Assembly: GCA_004764695.1 (NCBI GenBank)
Contig: SMSO01000035.1
Coordinates: forward strand, 3,670,040-3,734,039
DNA from: Schizochytrium sp. TIO01
Taxonomy: Eukaryota; Protista; Bigyra: Labyrinthulomycetes
Direction: 5' to 3'
DNA: 64,000 nt
In this document: piece by piece, positions 13,871 through 27,930 of the stretch
How the letters are laid out: each line of letters starts with the position of its first letter
Position numbering within the stretch: position 1 is the first letter of the stretch
Translations under genes and position numbers: made by a program
The notes under the pieces: model-generated
Told to the model about the DNA's origin: nothing
Seen by the model: only the letters and a program-made list of their open reading frames with translations
Databases searched by the model: none

Positions 13871-16261
13871 CTACTCAACTTGAGCATCTACAAGTGTGAT
13901 GCGGTTACGGTCGGCAGATACATGCAACACATCGCAGGCTTCGTACTCGCGAAGACATGCGTCAAGGTGATCGGACGTGAAGCCCTTGGCAAGAATGTAT
14001 GGCTCAATGTCAGCGTAGCGGACGGAAGTCGTTTGGTGCGCTCTAGCAAAGTCAGCAATGCCTCGCAAAATGGATCCGAGGAGGTCTCCTTGGGCAGCAC
14101 CACCTTGGCGCTGAGCTGTAGGATCCTCGTCTTCTTCAAGAGAGATCTTTGAGGCGCGTACTAGGCGAATAGCCTCTTGCACATCATTTTGGCTGACAAC
14201 TGTTGAAAAACGCAGACGTGCCAGGGCTTGGGCCATGCGTAAGATACTGAGCAGCTGGCGTGCTGTAAGGAGTGCTTGTGACTCAGCCTCGCGAGCATCG
14301 GCAGCGTCCTGCTGACGCATGCTTACATATTCTTCAACGATGATGTTTGCAAGCTCTTCCGGAACATGAGGAGTAACCTTGCGAGCCTGGGAAATGTAAG
14401 CACGCAACAGGGCCGGGCGAACAGGTTCAAATTCCAACTCAGGGTGTTTTTGGTGACGGTGAACATGGGTAATGTGACGAGCAAGAGCACTATCTTGAGC
14501 CATATCAGGCACATCAAGCAGCAGAAAGAGCAGATCAAAACGAGACAGAAGAGCCGCTGGCAGGTTAATATTTTCTGCAGGGGCATAACGCTTGTTGTAA
14601 CGCCCATAAAGAGGGTTAGCAGCAGCAAGAATAGATGTACGGGCATTCAATGTGGTAGTGATTCCAGCCTTGGCGATAGAAACTGTTTGCTGTTCCATGA
14701 CTTCGTGAATTGCAGTACGATCAGAGTCATCCATTTTATCAAACTCATCAATGCAACAGATACCCATATCGGCAAGGACAAGCGCACCGCCCTCAAGCGC
14801 CACATCTCCCGTGGTCTTGTCTCGTGTTACGGCCGCTGTAAGACCAACACCACTAGAACCTTTACCCGTAGTGTAAACGCCGCGTGGTGCGATTGAAGAA
14901 ATATGTTTGAGCAGCTGAGATTTGGCAACACCAGGATCACCAACGAGGCAAACATTTATGTCGCCGCGAATGCTCATACCATCATTCATTCGTCGCGTTA
15001 CGCCACCCACAAGTTGCAGGAGCAATGCCTTTTTCACGTCTTCATGACCGAAAATCTCGGGCGCGATAGATCGTGAAAGCTTATCGTACACATTTTCGTC
15101 ATCAGCTAGCTCGTCAACCTCGTCCTCCATTTCAGGGCTGAGGTTGTCGCTCATTTGGGTATAGCTCTTTTTGTGACGAGTAATTTTCATGCAATCAAGA
15201 TAGGTATTCATAACCAGGCCAATCCTCATCTGCTGAAACGCACTAAGTTTCTCTGGCAGGAAGATACCAACAACTTCAACACTATCACCAGGGCTGCACT
15301 GGCGTGTGCAGCTGCCCTTGGCATGGATGGTCATCGATCGTGGGATGTGTCCGATGGGTACTTGGTCCGGGGCTTCTTGTATCTTAATCTCTTGAAACTT
15401 CACAAACTTGCTTCCTCGCGTTTGCAAGTGTAGACGACCCTTTTTCTTACCGCGAGCCTCCTTACACACAGGGACCTCGCACACAAATTTAGGCATGAAC
15501 TCGGTGCCAAGCACCTCCTGGTAGGTTTCAAACCCACAGTCATCACATTGGTATGTCGCCACTTGCACTACAGGTTTGACATCAGATACTCGTACAACGA
15601 TGCCTCTGATGCGAACCAAGCCTCCGATTTGTGCAGCCAGAACATTTCGCAGAGATCCAGCCTCCATTTTCCGAGGTGGTACCACGACAACCTCATACCT
15701 ACGCAGCAGCGAGGGTGGCAATCTGGCTCTTGGGTCAATATCCCCGTCACCATTCTCCTCATCTTCATCCAAAGGATCTGCCTGGTTTTCACGGCGTTCT
15801 TGATTCCTCTGCTCTTGCTCGACACGGTGCATTCTCAAAACCTCATTGATGTAGTTTTCCTGAACATCTTCCGCGGCATCGCGAATTGCGTCTGGGTCAG
15901 TTGGTTCCGGCATAAGCTTATCTGCCTGCTTCGCAAACATGTCCACATAACGCACTGTGTTCTTCATAATGCGGTCTACGAGGCCATCTTCATGAACTCT
16001 GCCTACCATGTCGTCAAGGTCGATTTGGAGCACCCGGCGCTTTCGGTTGGCGATTTCACGCAGCTGCTCGCGGTACTTGTACACGAATTGACCTGCAGAG
16101 GGCTCATCGCGGTACTCCTGCAGGAATTTTCCTAGTTCAGCCTCGTCAGCACGGTAACTAATGCGAGATCCATCAGCAGCACCGACACTATCTCTGTTAC
16201 CAGCACCAGTGCGTTGGCTAGCTTCCAGGCCGTCGCTGCCCTGTGATTCCAGAGACATCAT
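13871..16261 (-). CDS. MCM7: DNA replication licensing factor MCM7
   Basis: Walker A GDPGVAKSQ, IDEFDKM, arginine finger SRFD and C4 zinc finger. MCM7-type KFQEIKIQE..DQVPIGHIPRS and EIFGHEDVKKALLL. Confidence 0.95.
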   Translation of the reverse strand: MMSLESQGSDGLEASQRTGAGNRDSVGAADGSRISYRADEAELGKFLQEYRDEPSAGQFVYKYREQLREIANRKRRVLQIDLDDMVGRVHEDGLVDRIMKNTVRYVDMFAKQADKLMPEPTDPDAIRDAAEDVQENYINEVLRMHRVEQEQRNQERRENQADPLDEDEENGDGDIDPRARLPPSLLRRYEVVVVPPRKMEAGSLRNVLAAQIGGLVRIRGIVVRVSDVKPVVQVATYQCDDCGFETYQEVLGTEFMPKFVCEVPVCKEARGKKKGRLHLQTRGSKFVKFQEIKIQEAPDQVPIGHIPRSMTIHAKGSCTRQCSPGDSVEVVGIFLPEKLSAFQQMRIGLVMNTYLDCMKITRHKKSYTQMSDNLSPEMEDEVDELADDENVYDKLSRSIAPEIFGHEDVKKALLLQLVGGVTRRMNDGMSIRGDINVCLVGDPGVAKSQLLKHISSIAPRGVYTTGKGSSGVGLTAAVTRDKTTGDVALEGGALVLADMGICCIDEFDKMDDSDRTAIHEVMEQQTVSIAKAGITTTLNARTSILAAANPLYGRYNKRYAPAENINLPAALLSRFDLLFLLLDVPDMAQDSALARHITHVHRHQKHPELEFEPVRPALLRAYISQARKVTPHVPEELANIIVEEYVSMRQQDAADAREAESQALLTARQLLSILRMAQALARLRFSTVVSQNDVQEAIRLVRASKISLEEDEDPTAQRQGGAAQGDLLGSILRGIADFARAHQTTSVRYADIEPYILAKGFTSDHLDACLREYEACDVLHVSADRNRITLVDAQVE

Positions 16262-22500: not shown

Positions 22501-23875
22501 ATTCGTCGGTGCCAATAGCAGTTTTGGCTTTCGAATCTGCTCTAACATCGCCCATTCCATAGCAGGGTACGTGTAATATCAAGACCTCCGTGTCCAACGC
22601 CCAGCTCATGAATACAATCGAATGCAGCCATCTAGCCTTTCGCATGTACGCGTTTGAGATGGTCTTGTCTTTGGGCATCTCGAGACTATTTTCAACGTCT
22701 TCAAGAAATACACCTCCAAAAATTAACATCCACCATCATGCCTACACCATCCAATTGCATTTTCTACTCTTCTAAATGGTACTGTTGGACATTACGACGA
22801 ACTGAGGTTCTTGTTTGTACATATCCGATTCACTGCACCTGCGATACCTTTTTGACCTTGGCAAGATCCCCGTTGAAACGAATTGCCATCCGTGGTTTGT
22901 AATCTCCGTGGATAAGGACTATACTGGCGCGGGTGTGCAGGAATCTTGCCATGATGATAAGGAGTGAGGATGAGCGGGTGTGCATTCCTGCTGCAGTTGA
23001 TTTTTCGGAGGTTGTGGAGAGGTCTGAGGCTCGGAACGTGTGGGTTTTGTAGGTGTTGCTGTAGGTGGTCTAGGCTCTCGCCTGAGGAGATTGCGAGTAT
23101 TCGTGATATTTTGAAGAGCTCATTCCTTGTGAACAGAGATGAACTGACATTGTAGGACTTGCCTTCCTGACAGTCACGACTATGTGAGATAACTTTGCGA
23201 TGCAACTGTGAAGAACTGGTTGAGGATTAGTGGGTTCTGGAATGCAAAGTCTGTTCAGAAACCTTGATTGTAGGAGAACTAAATCTACAGAACAGGGTAT
23301 AGCAGGTACATTTTTTAATTATAAAAAAAAAAAAAAAAGTGGTTTCGATGGTAGAGTTCACTCTTTGTCTGCTTTGCACCCCTCTATAGTCTTCAGGAGA
23401 GCACATATTCTTTACTCAGAGAAGAACTTGTTCAATTCGATTTTTGTATATACTGGACGTCCAAGTATTTGGTATAATCTTAAATCTGGACAACTATGTA
23501 GACAAGCCTGGTCAGTTGTGTTGCTACAGTATAAAATGCGGAGGCCTTATCATCTATCTCAAGATAAGTGTTGGTAAACATCGGCCACCCCTCTCATATA
23601 TCAAATATCGCGGCTCTATAGATGGTTTTGCTCAAAATTTCTAGCAATGAAGTGCTTAAGAAGAGCAATTCAGACAGATACAAATCAAGCTAGTACTCTC
23701 GTGATTAGTTTATCTTGTCCAAGAAATTGCAACCCCAGCAGTAATGTTTGTTTATTTGCCCCAGAGCGAATTCCTTTATCCCTGTTATGGAGCAGACAGC
23801 ATATTGGCGTTGCTGACAGAACTCCATAAATGTAGCAGGTAGCTATGCGAAGATCCCAGCATTAATAACGTGCAC

Positions 23876-23912
23876 CATTCATTCATTCATTCATTTATTC
23901 ATTCATTCATTT
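23876..23912. repeat. (CATT)n microsatellite just upstream of the SAP-ABC-GNAT gene
   Basis: Direct reading of the sequence. Confidence 0.85.
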
Positions 23913-23993
23913 ATTGTAAACTATTGAGTCAATCTGAGACATAGCAGTGCATTTATTTACAGAACCTGTAGGCTCTTGCCAACGAGAGCACGA

Positions 23994-26468
23994 ATGTCGG
24001 GGCCCTCGCCACGGCGCGGCTGGGTCCGCGTGGAGGACCTCACGAAGCGGCAGCTGCGAAGCGTGCTCACAGATCTTGGTAGATCTGCTGCAGGCTCCAA
24101 AACCCTGATGGCAGCTCGCATGGCAGAGATTCCGCTCGCTCCAGAGGCGTGCGTGGAGCTTGACCTAGACTCTGCAGCCCTTTTCGGCGTGAGAGATGCA
24201 GAAGGCAAGGCAATCAAAATTGAAACTCTCCGCCAACCTGTGCAGATCGAACTGGAACCACCAGCTCCTGTACGAAATCCTGCCAAAACTTTCCCAGGCG
24301 CCGAGATTCTCGTTGGACATCATACAGGTCGTATGGAAGGTGCAAAGATTATTGCTGCTAATGTACGCAATGAAGGTGAAAACATCTCGGCCTCTGCGGT
24401 TTCTGAAAATCTCTCGAGTTCTAGGAAGCGTCCGAGACCTGATGATAGCTTACAAAATTCTTTGGAAAAGGCTCTTGATGTCAAAGGCTCAGTTATCGTG
24501 GTGCTCGGCAAGACTGGCACGGGAAAGACTCAACTCTTGCGCCGTATTGAGCGGACATCAGAGCAGCTCCATGCAGCTGAGGAGATAGCTTGGAATGCAG
24601 AGCAAGCGATTGTGTCGCAGTTCGGAACTGTAGACGAGGCATCGAAATGGCTTCTGGCAGTGGGCTTAACATCTATTCCTTCTTGGTGCAAACCTTATCA
24701 TATCTTATCGACTGGCGAGAGATACAGGGCGGTTATAGCTCGACTACTGCAGAAGGCTTCGCAAACGAAAAGTCACGTACTTGTGCTGGATAACTTCACA
24801 AGCCAACTTGACCGAGACACAGCGCGGGCCTGTAGTGCTGCGTTAGCAAAGCAAGTACGCAAGTTTGGGCTTGTATGCGTTGTGAGCACAGGTCTGCTCG
24901 ATACTGTGGAATGGCTAAGCCCAGAAGTAATTATTTCTACTGATGGGTCCAGCGGTGCCACGGTACACACAAACAATGACTTCACAGGAGGCCCTCGTGT
25001 TCGCATCTCAATTAGCCGTCAAAAGGTTTTGAAGCCTTTGCGCGAGGGAATTGATGTCTCCATGGCAGATGTACAAGACGCGAATCTTCCGTCAGCACAA
25101 GTCAATAGGCTGAGAGACAGCTTTCAGTTTGAGGTTGACAATATTGAAGAGGCTCCTCAGACGCAAGGCGGGACTGTTCTGCTGACAAAAGTAAAAACAG
25201 ACGAAGCGACGCAGTCTTGCGACCGACTTTTTGATAATGCATTCGATGGACAATGTATGCTCCATGTTCCCTCTCGGAGTTCGCTAGCAGAAGATGAGGA
25301 CAGTATGTGCCAGTTTCGCTTGGGTGTAATTACAGGTCTGTCGGGATCAGCAAAGAGTGTTTTACTTCGCCAGCATTTTGGGCCTCCCACGGAAGTTTGT
25401 TGGTCACCTGGTCATTCTGTAAACGACCATTTTGCCTCAGCTAAGGACGCCAAGGAAAAGCTGAATGTGGTGTGTCTTGATGCCGAGGAGCATGGTGGGC
25501 GTTCCTATTCAGAGCTGAGCGCTGGTGAGCAAGAGCTGGCAAATTTGGCTCGCCTTTTGAACCATCAACATGTTTACCTTGATGAGTTTACCAGCACACT
25601 AGACCGTCAACTAGGCGTCAAAGTAGCGTACTCACTGGCTCAATTTCTGAATGCTCAGGGGGAGAAGAACCAAGGGTGGGTTATCGTGACATGTCATGCT
25701 GATGTACTTAGCCCTCTTGCGCAAGCTGCTCAATGGATGTATGATACATGGAAGGGTCCGTTTCGCCCCCCAGAAGACTTGTCAGATCCCTCTACTAGAA
25801 ATTCTGATAGTCGTGCAGATGGCGAGGAGGGGTTGCTTTCGGAGCTTCAACGTGAAGGTGTTTTGTCTGGGGAGCACGGGCAAATGCTTCGAAGACCATG
25901 CGTAGATCTTCGATTTGCTCGTTGTGAGCCATGGCTGTGGTCTTTATTTCGAGACCATCACTACAAAACCAAAAACTTGTCTCGCAAAGCGCGGTGTTTT
26001 GTTTTATTTCAAGAGAGGACAGGTACCTTGGTTGGATTTCTTGCAGTGATCCAGCAGGTAGGCACCCCGCATGAAGACGCTGATGGCTTCTCGTATGAAT
26101 CGACCTGGCGAGCGCATCGCACGGTAGTCTTGCCTTCCTGGCAAGGTCTAGGCATTGGATCTCGCCTTAGTGATGCCTCTGCAGAGGTTCATCGGCAACT
26201 CTCTTGTATGTACATGGCCCAAACTGTGCATCCTCGTTTTGGAAACTACCGGGATCGCAGTCCATTGTGGGAAGCTGCAAAGTGGAATCACTCTACCCGT
26301 GCCTACAAGATTGAAACATGGAAGCAGCGTCTGGAAAACAAACGTATCAAGCTTCGTATTCCACGCTTTGTATATGCCCATGTTTACAAGGGGCCCGCAG
26401 AAGACGATGAAGCTATGAAAGCTTCATTTACGAATGAACGGATACAATTTGATGATGACGAAGAATAA
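23994..26468 (+). CDS. SAP domain + tandem ABC-ATPase domains + Mom-type GNAT acyltransferase fusion
   Basis: SAP-like VEDLTKRQLRSVLTDLGRSAAGSKTLMAARM (~24030-24131). NBD1: GKTGTGKT / LSTGE / VLVLDNFTSQLDR. NBD2: GLSGSAKS / LSAGE / VYLDEFTSTLDR / VTCH. GNAT: W..FRDHHY and HRTVVLPSWQGLGIG. No TM segments. First ATG at 23994; an upstream exon is not excluded. Confidence 0.85.
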   Translation: MSGPSPRRGWVRVEDLTKRQLRSVLTDLGRSAAGSKTLMAARMAEIPLAPEACVELDLDSAALFGVRDAEGKAIKIETLRQPVQIELEPPAPVRNPAKTFPGAEILVGHHTGRMEGAKIIAANVRNEGENISASAVSENLSSSRKRPRPDDSLQNSLEKALDVKGSVIVVLGKTGTGKTQLLRRIERTSEQLHAAEEIAWNAEQAIVSQFGTVDEASKWLLAVGLTSIPSWCKPYHILSTGERYRAVIARLLQKASQTKSHVLVLDNFTSQLDRDTARACSAALAKQVRKFGLVCVVSTGLLDTVEWLSPEVIISTDGSSGATVHTNNDFTGGPRVRISISRQKVLKPLREGIDVSMADVQDANLPSAQVNRLRDSFQFEVDNIEEAPQTQGGTVLLTKVKTDEATQSCDRLFDNAFDGQCMLHVPSRSSLAEDEDSMCQFRLGVITGLSGSAKSVLLRQHFGPPTEVCWSPGHSVNDHFASAKDAKEKLNVVCLDAEEHGGRSYSELSAGEQELANLARLLNHQHVYLDEFTSTLDRQLGVKVAYSLAQFLNAQGEKNQGWVIVTCHADVLSPLAQAAQWMYDTWKGPFRPPEDLSDPSTRNSDSRADGEEGLLSELQREGVLSGEHGQMLRRPCVDLRFARCEPWLWSLFRDHHYKTKNLSRKARCFVLFQERTGTLVGFLAVIQQVGTPHEDADGFSYESTWRAHRTVVLPSWQGLGIGSRLSDASAEVHRQLSCMYMAQTVHPRFGNYRDRSPLWEAAKWNHSTRAYKIETWKQRLENKRIKLRIPRFVYAHVYKGPAEDDEAMKASFTNERIQFDDDEE

Positions 26469-26730
26469 TTAGCCTCTTTTTTTTCTTTTCTTTTTCTCTT
26501 TACTTATAGGCAAGACAAGCTCTCACTTTATGAAAATGTGTTAACGTACCAACATCTTGAATGATATATTCATAGGGTGCATATATAGTAAAAGCAAATT
26601 AAGCACTAGCCAAGAAAATGCGCTACAGAATATTTCAATATCTCAAGAGGAACCCACTAAACAAGTACGAGGCTTAAGATAAGAAGAGTGGTGCTTGGTT
26701 TATGTTAAAATGGTGAATCTAAGGGAGACT

Positions 26731-27930
26731 TTAAGCTGAGACAGTTTTGGCCACAGGCTCGCTGTCCTGGGCGTTCTTCTCAGCAAGAGACTCGCGTTCT
26801 TTGCGAACATCAGTCTGCTTGGAGGCTTCGTACTCACGGAACCAAGCGACTGTGTTGGAGAGACCCTCTTCAAGCTGTACCTGGGGCTTGTAGCCAAGAA
26901 GCTCAAAAGCTTTGGTGGTATCAGCACAAGTGTAAGGAACATCACCTGGCTGGTCCGGGAGGATCTCGATCTTTGCCTTGCGACCGCAGAGGCGCTCAAC
27001 GGTGGAAATGAAATCCTTGAGCTTGCAAGTGTTACCCTTGCCCAAGTTGATGACCTCGCAGCCGAGAGGCTTGTCGATGGCTAAGACCACACCGTTGACA
27101 ATATCCGAGATGTAGGTGTAATCACGGGCAGAGGACCCGTCACCGTACTGCTGCAGGGTGATGCCGTTGAAGATACGGTGCATAAACTTGAACGGGGCCA
27201 TGTCGGGGCGACCACGGGGCCCATACACGGTGAAGAAGCGCAGGCCAGTTGACTGCAGGCCGTAGAGAGAGTTGTACGTAGCAGCAAAGAGTTCACAGGA
27301 CTTTTTGGTAGCCGCGTACTGCGAAACCTGGTTGTCCACGCGGTCAGACTCAGAGAAAACCTGCTTCTTGGAGCCACCGTATACACTCGAAGATGATGCG
27401 TATACAAAGTTTTCTACACCATGCTCAGCAGCGATTGACATGAGTGACACGGTGCCGACAATGTTGCTGTGAATGTAGATGAAAGGGTCCTCGATACTAG
27501 GGCGAACACCAGCACGTGCAGCAAGGTGACATACGTGGGTGATGCTGTGCTCGTCAAAGAGTGACTTGACAAGCTCGCGATCACAGATGTCTGCCTCTAC
27601 AAAAACGAAGAGGTCCTCTGCTGAGGGCAGTCCATCGCGTTTGGCGATTTCAGCAGCCTTCTTGCGCAAGAGCTCGATGTTCGAGCGCTTGATCTCCACG
27701 TCGTAGTAGTCGTTCATCTCGTCGATACCCACGACCTTGTCGCCACGTTCTAGGAGAACCTCAGCGGTGTGGCTGCCAATGAAGCCGCCAACACCAGTGA
27801 GGAAGACAACCTTGGGATTGCCCGACATGTTTGAGGAGCCATCATCCTCAGACGACCACTGCGATGCGAGGTCATCCGAGTTGCTTCGCATGCTGTCAAG
27901 GTCGCTAGTTCCAGTGGACACACGGTTCAT
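26731..27930 (-). CDS. UDP-glucuronate 4-epimerase (extended SDR, GAE/CapI-like)
   Basis: TGVGGFIG, HLAARAGVRPS, YASSSSVYG, YAATK, LRFFTVYGPRGRPDMA, RDYTYI.DIV and QPGDV. Confidence 0.9.
   Translation of the reverse strand: MNRVSTGTSDLDSMRSNSDDLASQWSSEDDGSSNMSGNPKVVFLTGVGGFIGSHTAEVLLERGDKVVGIDEMNDYYDVEIKRSNIELLRKKAAEIAKRDGLPSAEDLFVFVEADICDRELVKSLFDEHSITHVCHLAARAGVRPSIEDPFIYIHSNIVGTVSLMSIAAEHGVENFVYASSSSVYGGSKKQVFSESDRVDNQVSQYAATKKSCELFAATYNSLYGLQSTGLRFFTVYGPRGRPDMAPFKFMHRIFNGITLQQYGDGSSARDYTYISDIVNGVVLAIDKPLGCEVINLGKGNTCKLKDFISTVERLCGRKAKIEILPDQPGDVPYTCADTTKAFELLGYKPQVQLEEGLSNTVAWFREYEASKQTDVRKERESLAEKNAQDSEPVAKTVSA

Follow-up and report, generated by a model that had tools for sequence, protein, structure and literature searches.

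An 824-aa protein encoded in the 64,000-nucleotide stretch of Schizochytrium sp. TIO01 DNA analysed here (the window) belongs to the phage/prophage ABC-ATPase+GNAT family (PHROG 11143) and carries twin nucleotide-binding domains (NBDs). The predicted enzyme probably acylates DNA or RNA bases. Our main reading, to which we assign a probability of about 0.4, is that it is a nuclear, nucleic-acid-directed, ATP-gated acyl-CoA N-acyltransferase derived from a ParB-associated phage/prophage ABC-GNAT protein, with DNA as its likeliest acceptor. The features on which this reading draws are as follows, in window coordinates.

23969..26961 (+), smallest stretch that appears to be transcribed: a short 5' leader precedes the ORF, and the 3' end runs into the convergent neighbour gene.
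23994..26468 (+), coding sequence for 824 aa with its stop codon, free of internal stops and present once in the genome.
24039..24122 (+), divergent SAP motif, aa 16-43, LTKRQLRSVLTDLGRSAAGSKTLMAARM, from hhalign against own-genome SAP domains and an AF2 helix-loop-helix.
24141..24356 (+), aa 50-121, structured and beta-rich but unassigned to any family (AF2 pLDDT about 84-93, five short strands).
24414..24968 (+), NBD1, degenerate ABC domain, aa 141-325: Walker A GKTGTGKT, signature LSTGE, Walker B VLVLDN.
24423..24437 (+), basic patch RKRPR, aa 144-148, within a disordered linker (pLDDT 50-61 over residues 131-150).
25179..25778 (+), NBD2, canonical ABC domain, aa 396-595: GLSGSAKS, LSAGE, VYLDE531, D-loop, C-H568-AD.
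25899..26393 (+), GNAT acyltransferase domain, aa 636-800, net charge +13, from Pfam, AF2, fold matches and charge.
25938..25964 (+), family-specific motif W649-x2-F652-x2-H655-H656-Y657, located at the acceptor side of the GNAT cleft and retained by phage singles and eukaryotic twins alike.
26109..26159 (+), beta4/motif A, the acyl-CoA pyrophosphate loop, R706-A-H-R709-TVVLP-S-W-Q717-G-L-G-I-G722, in invariant columns of the family alignments.

The open reading frame (23976..26468, + strand) would give 830 aa if translated from a TTG; the first ATG, at 23994, gives 824 aa. The gene is covered by likely transcriptome contigs from four studies, none with a splice joint, indicating that it has no introns. 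One transcript-like contig (X4 record 7, 2993 nt) spans exactly 23969-26961, contigs from X1, X9 and X7 start at 23920, 23953 and 23997, and depth climbs from 0-20 upstream to 285-733 over the gene. The gene is probably expressed, as the covering contigs look like transcriptome assemblies; we judged the runs to be RNA from their contig totals (27-48 Mb versus the 64-Mb genome) and their uneven depth.

The gene had been proposed from the sequence to be domesticated in a protist, and its setting and probable transcripts bear this out. Its contig, at least 3.7 Mb long, is one of 37 in a 64-Mb assembly; the gene is flanked by MCM7 and a eukaryote-like epimerase gene, and its GC (0.502) and GC3 (0.447) are near those of MCM7 (0.508 and 0.474), with GC3 close to that of its neighbours. 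An orthologue is located on a 380-kb Hondaea contig and others are found in the MMETSP and EukProt transcriptomes, with orthologue identities to the 824-aa protein of 59% and 42%. All 24 listed public runs, from 11 studies, contain at least half of the sampled words of the stretch. The closest characterised relatives are phage proteins, which would suit bacterial or phage contamination of the assembly, or a recent viral insertion, rather than a host gene; the contig, flanks, composition, orthologues and runs all contradict this, as do trees that set the twin-NBD clade apart from prokaryotic and viral forms, and we regard the idea as effectively refuted.

Homology to the single ABC+GNAT fusions of phages and bacteria, already recognized in the sequence-only reading, is strong. 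The phrog_11143 profile matches at E 5e-89 (299.7 bits, 3 stretches), and tblastn retrieves 73 phage records in two pieces, ABC (153-320) and GNAT (640-811), skipping NBD2. At E ≤ 1e-10 there are 945 matching representatives, and examples of phage members are Tenacibaculum phage pT24 gp038/037, Burkholderia phage phiE255 gp29 and Gordonia phage AnClar gp2. The family motifs W..F..HHY and R.HRTVVLP.[WFY]QG.G.G are present in the 824-aa protein and kept in twin and single forms. Such fusions were predicted by the Aravind group to acylate DNA bases (PMC7824862 sec. 3.4.7), a prediction that goes back, as cited there, to Iyer et al. 2013 (NAR gkt573); our literature search found no functional study of any family member. 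The suggestion of an ATPase-coupled nucleic-acid acyltransferase thus matches a published family prediction (PMC7824862 sec. 3.4.7), and it also fits the ParB operon, the basic GNAT and the chromatin-domain fusions described below.

A ParB_N-like gene immediately precedes the ABC-GNAT gene on the same strand in 67 of 80 prokaryotic loci (median gap 37 bp); together with one canonical NBD per polypeptide, this is typical of the family without strictly defining it. ParB-like partners experimentally activate a phage DNA-base dioxygenase (PMC13229309). A search of the whole TIO01 genome returned no ParB_N at E ≤ 0.001, the control matching in 10 of 14 genomes. Directly downstream, 41 loci carry a terminase-small-subunit-like gene (a lead only); among IMG/VR phages, 12 loci have a UvrD helicase gene directly downstream, 11 have an AEP primase gene directly upstream and 13 have PolA nearby. 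Genuine Mom genes occur in 5 of the 80 loci, immediately downstream of ABC-GNAT in two, and a Formyl_trans_N (Fmt-like) gene follows ABC-GNAT in Gordonia phage AnClar and Burkholderia phage phiE255.

The predicted architecture, SAP, two ABC NBDs and a C-terminal GNAT in a single polypeptide, was recovered, and the SAP motif is the part that needs qualification. Profile-profile comparison and a predicted helix-loop-helix favour it, but its Pfam score (PF02037) is below threshold, at 11.4 bits for the whole protein, 17.3 bits for the N-terminus alone and 19.9-20.7 bits in orthologues, against a gathering score of 23.9; the protein is not among the genome-wide SAP matches at E ≤ 1. Against a profile built from 19 stop-free genuine SAP domains of the same genome, the protein alone scores 8.6 bits, which 2 of 2000 shuffles reach. 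The segment is kept in four relatives, three of which outscore all 2000 shuffles with the SAP profile, and hhalign against the own-genome domains gives a probability of 95.2% (E 2.7e-8, 35 columns). The AF2 model has helix 18-27, a loop and helix 36-44 (pLDDT about 90). Given this retention in relatives, the hhalign match and the modelled fold, we read the N-terminal segment as a divergent SAP. The beta-rich segment that follows has sequence similarity only to the Hondaea orthologue, and the basic patch, retained in relative P0002 as SRKRPRKPD, appears NLS-like.

Both NBDs are soluble and no transmembrane domain accompanies them, as the sequence-only reading had it: the highest Kyte-Doolittle 19-residue window reaches 1.45. 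ABC_tran scores 35.8 bits (cut-off 25), and the two NBDs are 30.5% identical to each other. NBD1 has an intact Walker A, signature and D-loop, with the catalytic Glu of Walker B replaced by Asn267 and the switch His by Leu; NBD2 has all five ABC motifs (Walker A, signature, Walker B Glu, D-loop and switch His) and is predicted to be catalytically competent. Across the twin clade, NBD1 keeps the Glu in 23 of 45 members and the His in 17 of 45, and NBD2 keeps the Glu in 45 of 45. The full-length AF2 model is compact (pTM 0.87).

Pfam Acetyltransf_1 matches the GNAT domain at 27.5-30.8 bits (cut-off 20.7), and its AF2 model (pLDDT 83.5) aligns with solved GNATs at VIA Z scores up to 12.8 over about 138 residues. 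The acceptor-side sequence WLWSLFRDHHY occupies aa 647-657, with the H655 and H656 codons at 25956 and 25959; motif A, a match to generic GNAT motif A in profile searches, reads RTVVLPSWQGLGIG at 26118-26159 and, with the preceding residues, RAHRTVVLPSWQGLGIG at aa 706-722. The positions originally reported for both motifs agree with the translation. The residues on the acceptor side hardly vary between actinophages and protists, which argues for a universal substrate. The GNAT is basic family-wide (net-charge medians of +8.5 to +14, with 93-100% of members positive), unlike the neutral or acidic NBDs, favouring a nucleic-acid acceptor. Fold ranking placed protein N-terminal acetyltransferases on top and did not single out nucleic-acid enzymes, but it is little informative because the scores are nearly flat (Z 11-12.8).

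The twin-NBD form is present in stramenopiles, foraminifera and chlorarachniophytes, and a separate twin group includes a dinoflagellate. According to NBD and GNAT-region trees, the two NBDs of the 824-aa protein go back to a single ancient tandem duplication that other SAR protists share. Eukaryotic members carry further domains: a Chromo fusion in Elphidium (E 6e-12) and an SBNO helicase module in Pelagodinium. Three cluster representatives (P0024, P0030 and P0077) fuse ABC+GNAT, or the GNAT core, to a SpoU-type RNA 2'-O-methyltransferase; SpoU_methylase (PF00588) is C-terminal in P0024 (E 6.4e-24) and P0030 (E 3.7e-7) and among the precomputed Pfam domains of P0077. All three fall in a 30-row clade with the 824-aa protein (SH-like support 99), in a sister subclade.

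In the mechanism that we propose, the two NBDs would form an intramolecular head-to-tail sandwich that stands in for the homodimer of the single-NBD phage proteins, and each ATPase unit would have a single GNAT. The degenerate site (NBD1 Walker A/B with the NBD2 signature) would hold ATP stably, and hydrolysis would occur only at the consensus site formed by the NBD2 Walker A/B/His and the NBD1 signature LSTGE. ATP-driven closing and opening may clamp or remodel nucleic acid, and a base would enter the basic GNAT cleft, putatively lined by the invariant W/F/HHY, R-x-H-R and Y752 residues, where its exocyclic amine would be acylated from acyl-CoA. The phage enzymes are probably brought to DNA by a separate ParB-like protein; in the protist, the fused SAP motif and the RKRPR NLS-like patch may have assumed targeting, including nuclear import, in place of ParB. 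Tentatively, this could be taken further: the enzyme, ATP-gated and captured once from a phage ParB/ABC-GNAT module whose DNA-loading partner was replaced by fused chromatin tethers, might mark the genomic DNA of thraustochytrids and other SAR protists with an undescribed acyl group (for example, acetyl) on its bases. If so, these tethers would be lineage-specific: labyrinthulomycetes would use SAP, foraminifera Chromo and a dinoflagellate an SBNO helicase.

DNA is favoured as acceptor by the chromatin tethers of eukaryotic members, SAP in TIO01, Chromo in Elphidium and SBNO in Pelagodinium. With the same architecture and ATP gating, the acceptor could instead be RNA (tRNA, rRNA or other nuclear RNA), for example in ac4C-type base acetylation, performed alongside ribose methylation in relatives, with SAP binding RNA or sitting at transcription sites. 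The SpoU fusions in P0024, P0030 and P0077, from the same clade as the 824-aa protein, make this a serious rival, and the Formyl_trans_N neighbour in the AnClar and phiE255 lineages points in the same direction; both also count against DNA. So does the appearance of the ribosome-acting ABCF and ABCE1 proteins among the best matches to the twin-NBD model. SAP domains can bind RNA as well, and the SAP signal is weak in the 824-aa protein alone. The tRNA-acetylating GNAT toxins TacT, AtaT and GmvT are among the fold matches, TmcA/NAT10 provides a precedent for an ATPase-coupled RNA acetyltransferase, and a basic GNAT suits RNA as well as DNA. RNA nevertheless fits poorly with the ParB_N operon and the terminase and replication-module placement, hallmarks of phage DNA transactions, with the adjacency of Mom in phage loci and with the Chromo and SBNO-helicase fusions; moreover, no THUMP, PUA or TmcA C-terminal tRNA-binding domain was detected in the 824-aa protein. 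We consider an RNA acceptor unlikely, if a real contender.

More doubtful is an acetyltransferase of chromatin proteins (for example, histones) or other DNA-bound proteins, with the ABC module serving as a DNA clamp and the GNAT acetylating protein bound there. Its attraction is that the top folds are NatD, Naa60, RimI and Naa10/50, which are protein N-terminal or lysine acetyltransferases, and that SAP and Chromo are typical companions of histone-modifying enzymes. That ranking carries little information, however; the acceptor-side residues are invariant across actinophages, proteobacterial phages, Bacteroidota phages and the protist, whose hosts share no chromatin proteins, and a strongly basic GNAT is unfavourable for basic histone tails. 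Similarly improbable is acylation of a small molecule or nucleotide (a dNTP, NTP, polyamine or antibiotic-like compound), despite the many SpeG, aminoglycoside, phosphinothricin and arylalkylamine acetyltransferases among the nearest solved GNATs: the SAP/Chromo/SBNO fusions, ParB operon and basic surface would be hard to explain. Family activity has so far been predicted only, which leaves a little room for a non-catalytic ATP-dependent scaffold as well, but the invariance of the CoA loop and candidate catalytic residues makes an inactive scaffold unlikely. A nucleic-acid-directed acyltransferase, with DNA as the likeliest acceptor, remains our preferred reading.

Several known systems resemble the 824-aa protein in part. 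The sequence-only reading had called the GNAT Mom-type, yet Pfam Mom, profile searches and fold ranking identified a generic GNAT only. The Mom family profile (PF25680) did not match the 824-aa protein or 11 GNAT-domain relatives at E ≤ 1, nor, at E ≤ 10, the orthologues or the N-terminal segment taken alone; it does match a neighbouring phage gene (E 1e-12). The ABC-GNAT family profile failed to retrieve Mom (PDB 8BV8) at E ≤ 10, hhalign of the family alignment against Mu Mom gave a probability of 0.07% (E 0.67, 19 columns), and jackhmmer from Mom recovered the neighbouring Mom genes but none of the ABC-GNAT proteins that all 80 loci encode. In the nearly flat fold rankings, 8BV8 was outside the top 50 by Foldseek and VIA-align. 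Judged by sequence, the 824-aa protein is not a close relative of phage Mu Mom. The two share the GNAT fold and an Arg at the start of beta4, and the W...HY arrangement in the N-terminal helix region of the family aligns, without statistical significance, to Mom W48/H58/Y59, which are needed for Mom activity (PMC13219725 sec. 13). Mom and the ABC-GNAT enzyme are encoded side by side in some phages, and in phiE255 the ABC-GNAT gene follows the tail-fibre genes, a mom-like position. Mom, however, has no ATPase and no Q/R-x-x-G-x-G/A CoA loop, reading LHDDMPRNSES where the 824-aa protein has the family-invariant LPSWQGLGIGS. Mom is a tRNA-dependent DNA adenine N6 glycyl-transferase whose donor is Gly-tRNAGly and whose HTH-like insertion is essential; this Gly-tRNA mechanism supersedes an earlier one (PMC13219725), on which the suggestion of including Fe2+ in an assay had depended.

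ABCF/EttA, ABCE1, UvrA and MCR component A2 likewise carry two NBDs per chain and no membrane domain, and such single-chain proteins gave the full-length model its best fold matches (E 2e-10 to 1e-8). Of these, ABCF, UvrA and ABCE1 work on nucleic acids or ribosomes. Many asymmetric ABC proteins also have one site without the catalytic Glu and switch His. None of the four has a GNAT, their inter-NBD linkers or insertions (PtIM, FeS, UvrA DNA-binding insertions) are missing in the 824-aa protein, and the NBD tree derives its NBDs from the phage ABC-GNAT lineage rather than from those families. In public records the Hondaea fermentalgiana orthologue is named FtsE, with which only an ABC NBD is shared; given an NCBIfam FtsE score of 34.6 bits (cut-off 264.85), a second NBD, a GNAT and no partner logic of the FtsX type, that name is a mis-annotation. 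An ABC transporter was also rejected, every NCBIfam transporter equivalog scoring far under its cut-off and no hydrophobic segment being of transmembrane grade.

TmcA/NAT10 (Kre33) fuses a P-loop ATPase to a GNAT and acetylates RNA cytidine N4 with acetyl-CoA and ATP. The concept of a P-loop ATPase plus GNAT acting on a polymer nucleobase is the one proposed for the 824-aa protein. The TmcA/NAT10 ATPase is a helicase-type domain whereas that of the 824-aa protein is an ABC NBD; TmcA/NAT10 also has another domain order and a dedicated tRNA-binding domain, and we saw no homology beyond the GNAT superfamily. The phage ABC-GNAT proteins have the same domain order as the 824-aa protein, NBD then GNAT, are 28-32% identical to it across both domains, have a similarly basic GNAT and share the motifs VGL.S.P.W.KPYH.LS.GE, DEFTS.LDR, CH.D, W..F..HHY, R.HRTVVLP.[WFY]QG.G.G and QTVHP.FG.YR..SPLW. 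At 340-450 aa, they have one NBD, with fully canonical ATPase motifs in 47 of 48, whereas the 824-aa protein has a tandem-duplicated NBD forming a predicted single-chain pseudo-dimer with a degenerate first site and one GNAT. The N-terminal SAP motif, beta segment and NLS-like linker are additions relative to the phage proteins, and, unlike phage members, the 824-aa protein is encoded by a chromosomal eukaryotic gene without a ParB-like partner gene.

Judged from its sequence, the ABC-GNAT protein is a eukaryotic, SAP-bearing, single-chain and asymmetric twin-NBD variant of a computationally predicted kind of enzyme, the phage and prophage fusions of an ABC ATPase with a GNAT domain, for which acylation of DNA bases has been predicted in the literature (PMC7824862, section 3.4.7). 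Translation confirmed the architecture proposed by the sequence-only reading, with two NBDs and the GNAT domain in a single open frame, and its coordinates proved exact (H655 codon at 25956, H656 codon at 25959, RTVVLPSWQGLGIG at 26118-26159). The gene and its surroundings comprise the following features, in window coordinates unless residues are given:

23976-26468, forward strand: ABC-GNAT ORF, 830 aa if begun at a TTG, 824 aa if begun at the first ATG (23994)
24141-24356 (aa 50-121), forward strand: predicted beta-rich segment after the SAP motif and before the linker, pLDDT about 84-93
aa 144-148: RKRPR patch in a disordered linker, present also in the Hondaea orthologue
13874-16261, reverse strand: MCM7, a complete 796-aa uninterrupted ORF with MCM_N, OB, P-loop, lid and MCM7 winged helix
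26731-27930, reverse strand: convergent NAD-dependent epimerase/dehydratase gene, its end and the stop codon of ABC-GNAT 263 bp apart

In Pfam, residues 152-285 and 476-571 gave ABC/AAA signals and residues 651-743 matched Acetyltransf_1 (27.5 bits against a cut-off of 20.7). A hydrophobicity scan found no TM-grade segment, in agreement with the earlier assignment of a protein lacking a TM domain, and all NCBIfam matches were to generic transporter-type NBDs, far under equivalog cut-offs. Predicted models were obtained for the full-length protein (pLDDT 87.9, pTM 0.87) and for the GNAT domain (pLDDT 83.5). The beta-rich segment resembled only the Hondaea orthologue in sequence and had no match in Pfam, PHROG or the ESM Atlas; the RKRPR patch may serve as a nuclear localisation signal.

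Sequence searches tied the protein firmly to phages. PHROG 11143 matched it at E 5e-89, and tblastn returned 73 phage records, Tenacibaculum phage pT24 among them, whose 290-410-aa proteins align in two pieces, NBD1 and GNAT, with NBD2 skipped; of the phage or bacterial origin suggested earlier, the phage-derived reading holds. An exhaustive phmmer search yielded 945 representatives at E<=1e-10, and single-NBD forms occurred in at least 591 IMG/VR contigs and in the genomes of at least 562 prokaryotic species; most of these genomes are from Planctomycetota, and Nonomuraea and some archaeal MAGs are represented too. The best named relative, from Hondaea fermentalgiana (P0002; 59% identity, on a 380-kb contig), is the only orthologue named in NCBI/UniRef, where it is called 'Cell division ATP-binding protein FtsE'. 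We reject that name as a mis-annotation, which hides the family from keyword searches. Our literature search found no functional study of any family member; the abstract of Iyer et al. 2013 reportedly mentions a 'stramenopile alga' for some systems.

The gene is single-copy in the Schizochytrium sp. TIO01 genome (64.07 Mb in 37 contigs) and lies, with the rest of the window, at 3.67-3.73 Mb of its contig, about 8 kb from the upstream MCM7. Neither gene appears to have introns, which suggests an intron-poor genome, and their base composition is close (GC and GC3 of 0.502 and 0.447 for the ABC-GNAT gene, 0.508 and 0.474 for MCM7). Contamination as the origin of the gene was considered and rejected as scarcely credible.

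Sequencing data further inform on transcription. All 24 listed public runs (11 studies) contain at least half of the words sampled from the window, and the locus was compared with four assemblies, each from a different study and 29-39 Mb in size. Their contigs start at 23920-23997, depth climbs from 0-20 upstream to 285-733 across the gene, one contig of X4 (the assembly of one run) spans exactly 23969-26961, and no contig shows joints across the locus. From the contig totals and steep depth steps we infer that these runs are RNA, a status that is not on record; if the assemblies are transcriptomes, the gene would be transcribed, intron-free and equipped with a short 5' leader. Contigs of three runs pass through both the ABC-GNAT and epimerase genes, and with the X4 contig reaching 26961, the 3' transcript ends of the two convergent genes appear to overlap on the same assumption. 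In one strain, four bases (AAGA) are inserted after 26662, within the shared 3' region (26469-26961). An A+T-rich ATTC/ATTT-type simple repeat at 23869-23919, just 5' of the transcript start, is a possible core-promoter element. Between runs the gene differed at 5 synonymous and 8 non-synonymous positions, mostly in linkers and too few for an estimate of selection.

Phylogenetic analyses indicated how the eukaryotic form arose. Twin NBDs characterise 62 of the best 152 representatives, and a single NBD 77 of them. For 45 twin proteins, the NBD tree gathered the NBD2s into one clade (SH-aLRT 98) and the NBD1s into another (94), with the phage-size single forms apart; in GNAT-region trees, built with FastTree only and with moderate supports, all 42 scorable twin proteins fell into one clade (92). 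Together, these clades indicate one acquisition and one tandem duplication. The main twin clade includes Hondaea (a stramenopile), Gymnochlora (a chlorarachniophyte) and the foraminifera Nonionella and Elphidium; the dinoflagellate Pelagodinium represents a second, separate twin group. Catalytic residues were distributed unevenly between the two domains:

Conservation of catalytic residues in the NBDs
Single-NBD (phage size): catalytic Glu 47/48, switch His 47/48
Twin NBD2: catalytic Glu 45/45, switch His 32/45
Twin NBD1: catalytic Glu 23/45, switch His 17/45

In the window protein, NBD1 has Asn in place of the Glu and Leu in place of the His, and NBD2 keeps both residues. Its full-length predicted model came closest in fold to the single-chain twin-NBD proteins ABCF/EttA, MCR component A2, UvrA and ABCE1.

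The N-terminal SAP motif proposed earlier stood up less evenly. Pfam SAP scored 11.4 bits at residues 13-40, under its cut-off of 23.9, and recurred at the same position in orthologues at 19.9-20.7 bits, also sub-threshold; the gene was absent from genome-wide SAP matches at E<=1, a search in which 21 SAP domains passed the cut-off. Against a genome-specific profile built from the 19 of these with a stop-free extracted segment, the Hondaea orthologue and two further relatives (P0003 and P0109) outscored all 2000 shuffles, whereas the window protein alone reached 8.6 bits, equalled by 2 of 2000. Profile-profile comparison of five N-termini with the genome's SAP domains gave 95.2% (E 2.7e-8) over 35 columns, the entire motif, and the predicted model places a helix (18-27), a loop and a second helix (36-44) at this position. 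We accept the segment as a divergent SAP on these profile and model comparisons.

The sequence-only reading had also called the GNAT domain Mom-type, after the DNA-modifying enzyme of phage Mu, a designation that our analysis does not support. Pfam Mom (PF25680) matched neither the protein, its orthologues nor 11 GNAT-domain relatives; a GNAT-only family profile run against PDB sequences brought up only weak matches to generic GNATs and missed 8BV8 (Mom), which was among those searched; hhalign of the family GNAT with Mu Mom gave a probability of 0.07%; and jackhmmer from Mom found true Mom neighbours, not ABC-GNAT proteins. By fold, the GNAT model matched N-terminal acetyltransferases, RimI, SpeG and similar proteins (Z 11-12.8), with Mom absent from the top 50 by either of two aligners. 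Mom lacks the Q/R-x-x-G-x-G/A CoA loop, whereas this loop is invariant in the ABC-GNAT family; the donor used by Mom is Gly-tRNAGly, not acyl-CoA (PMC13219725). The sole stretch aligned by hhalign sets W649/H656/Y657 opposite Mom W48/H58/Y59, residues required for Mom activity (PMC13219725, section 13); as a link to Mom this is at most suggestive, the alignment not being significant. What holds of the earlier interpretation, as far as sequence can tell, is a phage-derived, nucleic-acid-directed, ATP-coupled acyltransferase.

The two enzymes nevertheless meet in phage genomes. In some phage contigs the gene next to ABC-GNAT does match PF25680 (E 1e-12), and a genuine Mom gene lies near the ABC-GNAT gene in 5 of 80 viral (IMG/VR) loci, immediately downstream in two, so some phages hold both GNAT-type enzymes in one cluster:

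Mom-family genes (PF25680) near ABC-GNAT genes in viral loci
L044:6032-6952 (E 1e-12)
L060:6080-6547
L065:3212-3841
L077:3015-3593
L027:1503-2369

In the Mu-like phage phiE255, the ABC-GNAT gene follows the tail-fibre genes, the place of mom in Mu. Together, the negative profile and fold comparisons and the shared loci describe distinct GNAT families joined in phage genomes.

Prokaryotic relatives showed a conserved neighbourhood. In 67 of 80 prokaryotic loci the gene immediately upstream of the enzyme gene encodes a ParB_N-like protein (median gap 37 bp), an assignment that Pfam also makes on an Arthrobacter phage homologue, and in 41 the gene immediately downstream encodes an HTH or small-terminase-like protein of about 176 aa. 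The order in Planctomycetota is S1/HtrA-like protease (35 loci), ParB-like gene, ABC-GNAT and the 176-aa protein (for example L103:1688-2899 and L106:4235-4798). PDB sequence searches with the ParB-like and downstream proteins gave no match; small terminase as the identity of the latter is a lead only, from ESM Atlas look-alikes. The single-NBD form is strikingly enriched in Pirellulales, Thermoguttaceae and Planctomycetaceae (loci L089-L168), which probably carry a widespread prophage or gene-transfer-agent-like element. In IMG/VR phages, UvrD helicase, AEP or VapE primases and PolA flank the gene. Two unrelated phage lineages have a Formyl_trans_N (PF00551) gene immediately behind the enzyme gene, with overlapping stop and start codons (Gordonia phage AnClar gp3, L002:2312-2959, E 5e-10; Burkholderia phage phiE255 gp30, L001:5996-6607, 2.9e-21), and its product could form a third part of the modification pathway. 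The AnClar protein is annotated as 'tRNA-methyltransferase'. Formyl_trans_N was a neighbour in none of the 160 metagenomic and genomic loci sampled, the 80 from IMG/VR included, and ParB, dominant in prokaryotic genomes, neighboured 1 of 80 in IMG/VR, so both links are clade-specific. Experiments have shown that a phage DNA-base dioxygenase needs ParB-like partners (PMC13229309). A whole-genome search found no ParB_N in TIO01, which fits a replacement of ParB by fused tethers.

Several features bear on what the enzyme would acylate. The GNAT domain is basic, with a net charge of +13 in the window protein and medians of +8.5 to +14 across the family (93-100% of members positive), while the NBDs are neutral or acidic; its acceptor-side residues stay unchanged all the way from actinophages to protists. 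Both properties argue for a nucleic-acid acceptor in general. We tentatively favour DNA (probability roughly 0.4), as suggested by the ParB_N operon with its dioxygenase precedent, the small-terminase-like neighbour (as a lead), the helicase, primase and PolA flanks, and fusions to chromatin modules: the Elphidium relative P0041 carries a bona fide Chromo domain at residues 128-170 (E 6e-12), and the Pelagodinium relative P0100 a complete Strawberry-notch (SBNO) helicase module at 1295-2557 (AAA_34 4e-90, Helicase_C_4 2e-74).

Fusion partners conflict, however, with chromatin modules on one side and an RNA methylase on the other. Three relatives, P0024 (1262 aa), P0030 (860 aa) and P0077 (683 aa), join ABC and GNAT, or the GNAT core, to a SpoU/TrmH-type 2'-O-methyltransferase and fall in the sister subclade of the SAP-bearing group within the same 30-row clade (SH-like support 99); together with the Formyl_trans_N genes of AnClar and phiE255, they speak for RNA, the main alternative acceptor, to which we give a lower probability than to DNA. 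These three sequences come from metagenome and Logan contigs, and one source names P0024 'tRNA (guanosine-2'-O-)-methyltransferase'. A chromatin protein as acceptor appears improbable, and a small-molecule acceptor or an inactive protein equally so. DNA remains our preferred but tentative reading.

To our knowledge, no DNA-base-acylating enzyme is known in any eukaryote, and we know of no identified writer for reported marks such as plant N4-acetyl-deoxycytidine. Whether such marks are truly epigenetic is reportedly debated (PMC8722123, PMC11065753). A DNA acceptor would make the product a new class of eukaryotic DNA mark; an RNA acceptor would make the enzyme a second, ABC-powered route for RNA base acylation. 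Our analysis corrects the public 'FtsE' label and adds a chromosomal, genetically tractable and, by our reading of the assemblies, expressed eukaryotic member, whose form is a single-chain asymmetric ABC pseudo-dimer of one origin spread over SAR protists; the prokaryotic and viral forms, with their tight ParB operon, could be tested in a heterologous host as a simple pair of genes. Outside the Mom and NAT10/TmcA lineages, we know of no better-defined candidate among dedicated nucleic-acid acyltransferases than the ABC-GNAT family.
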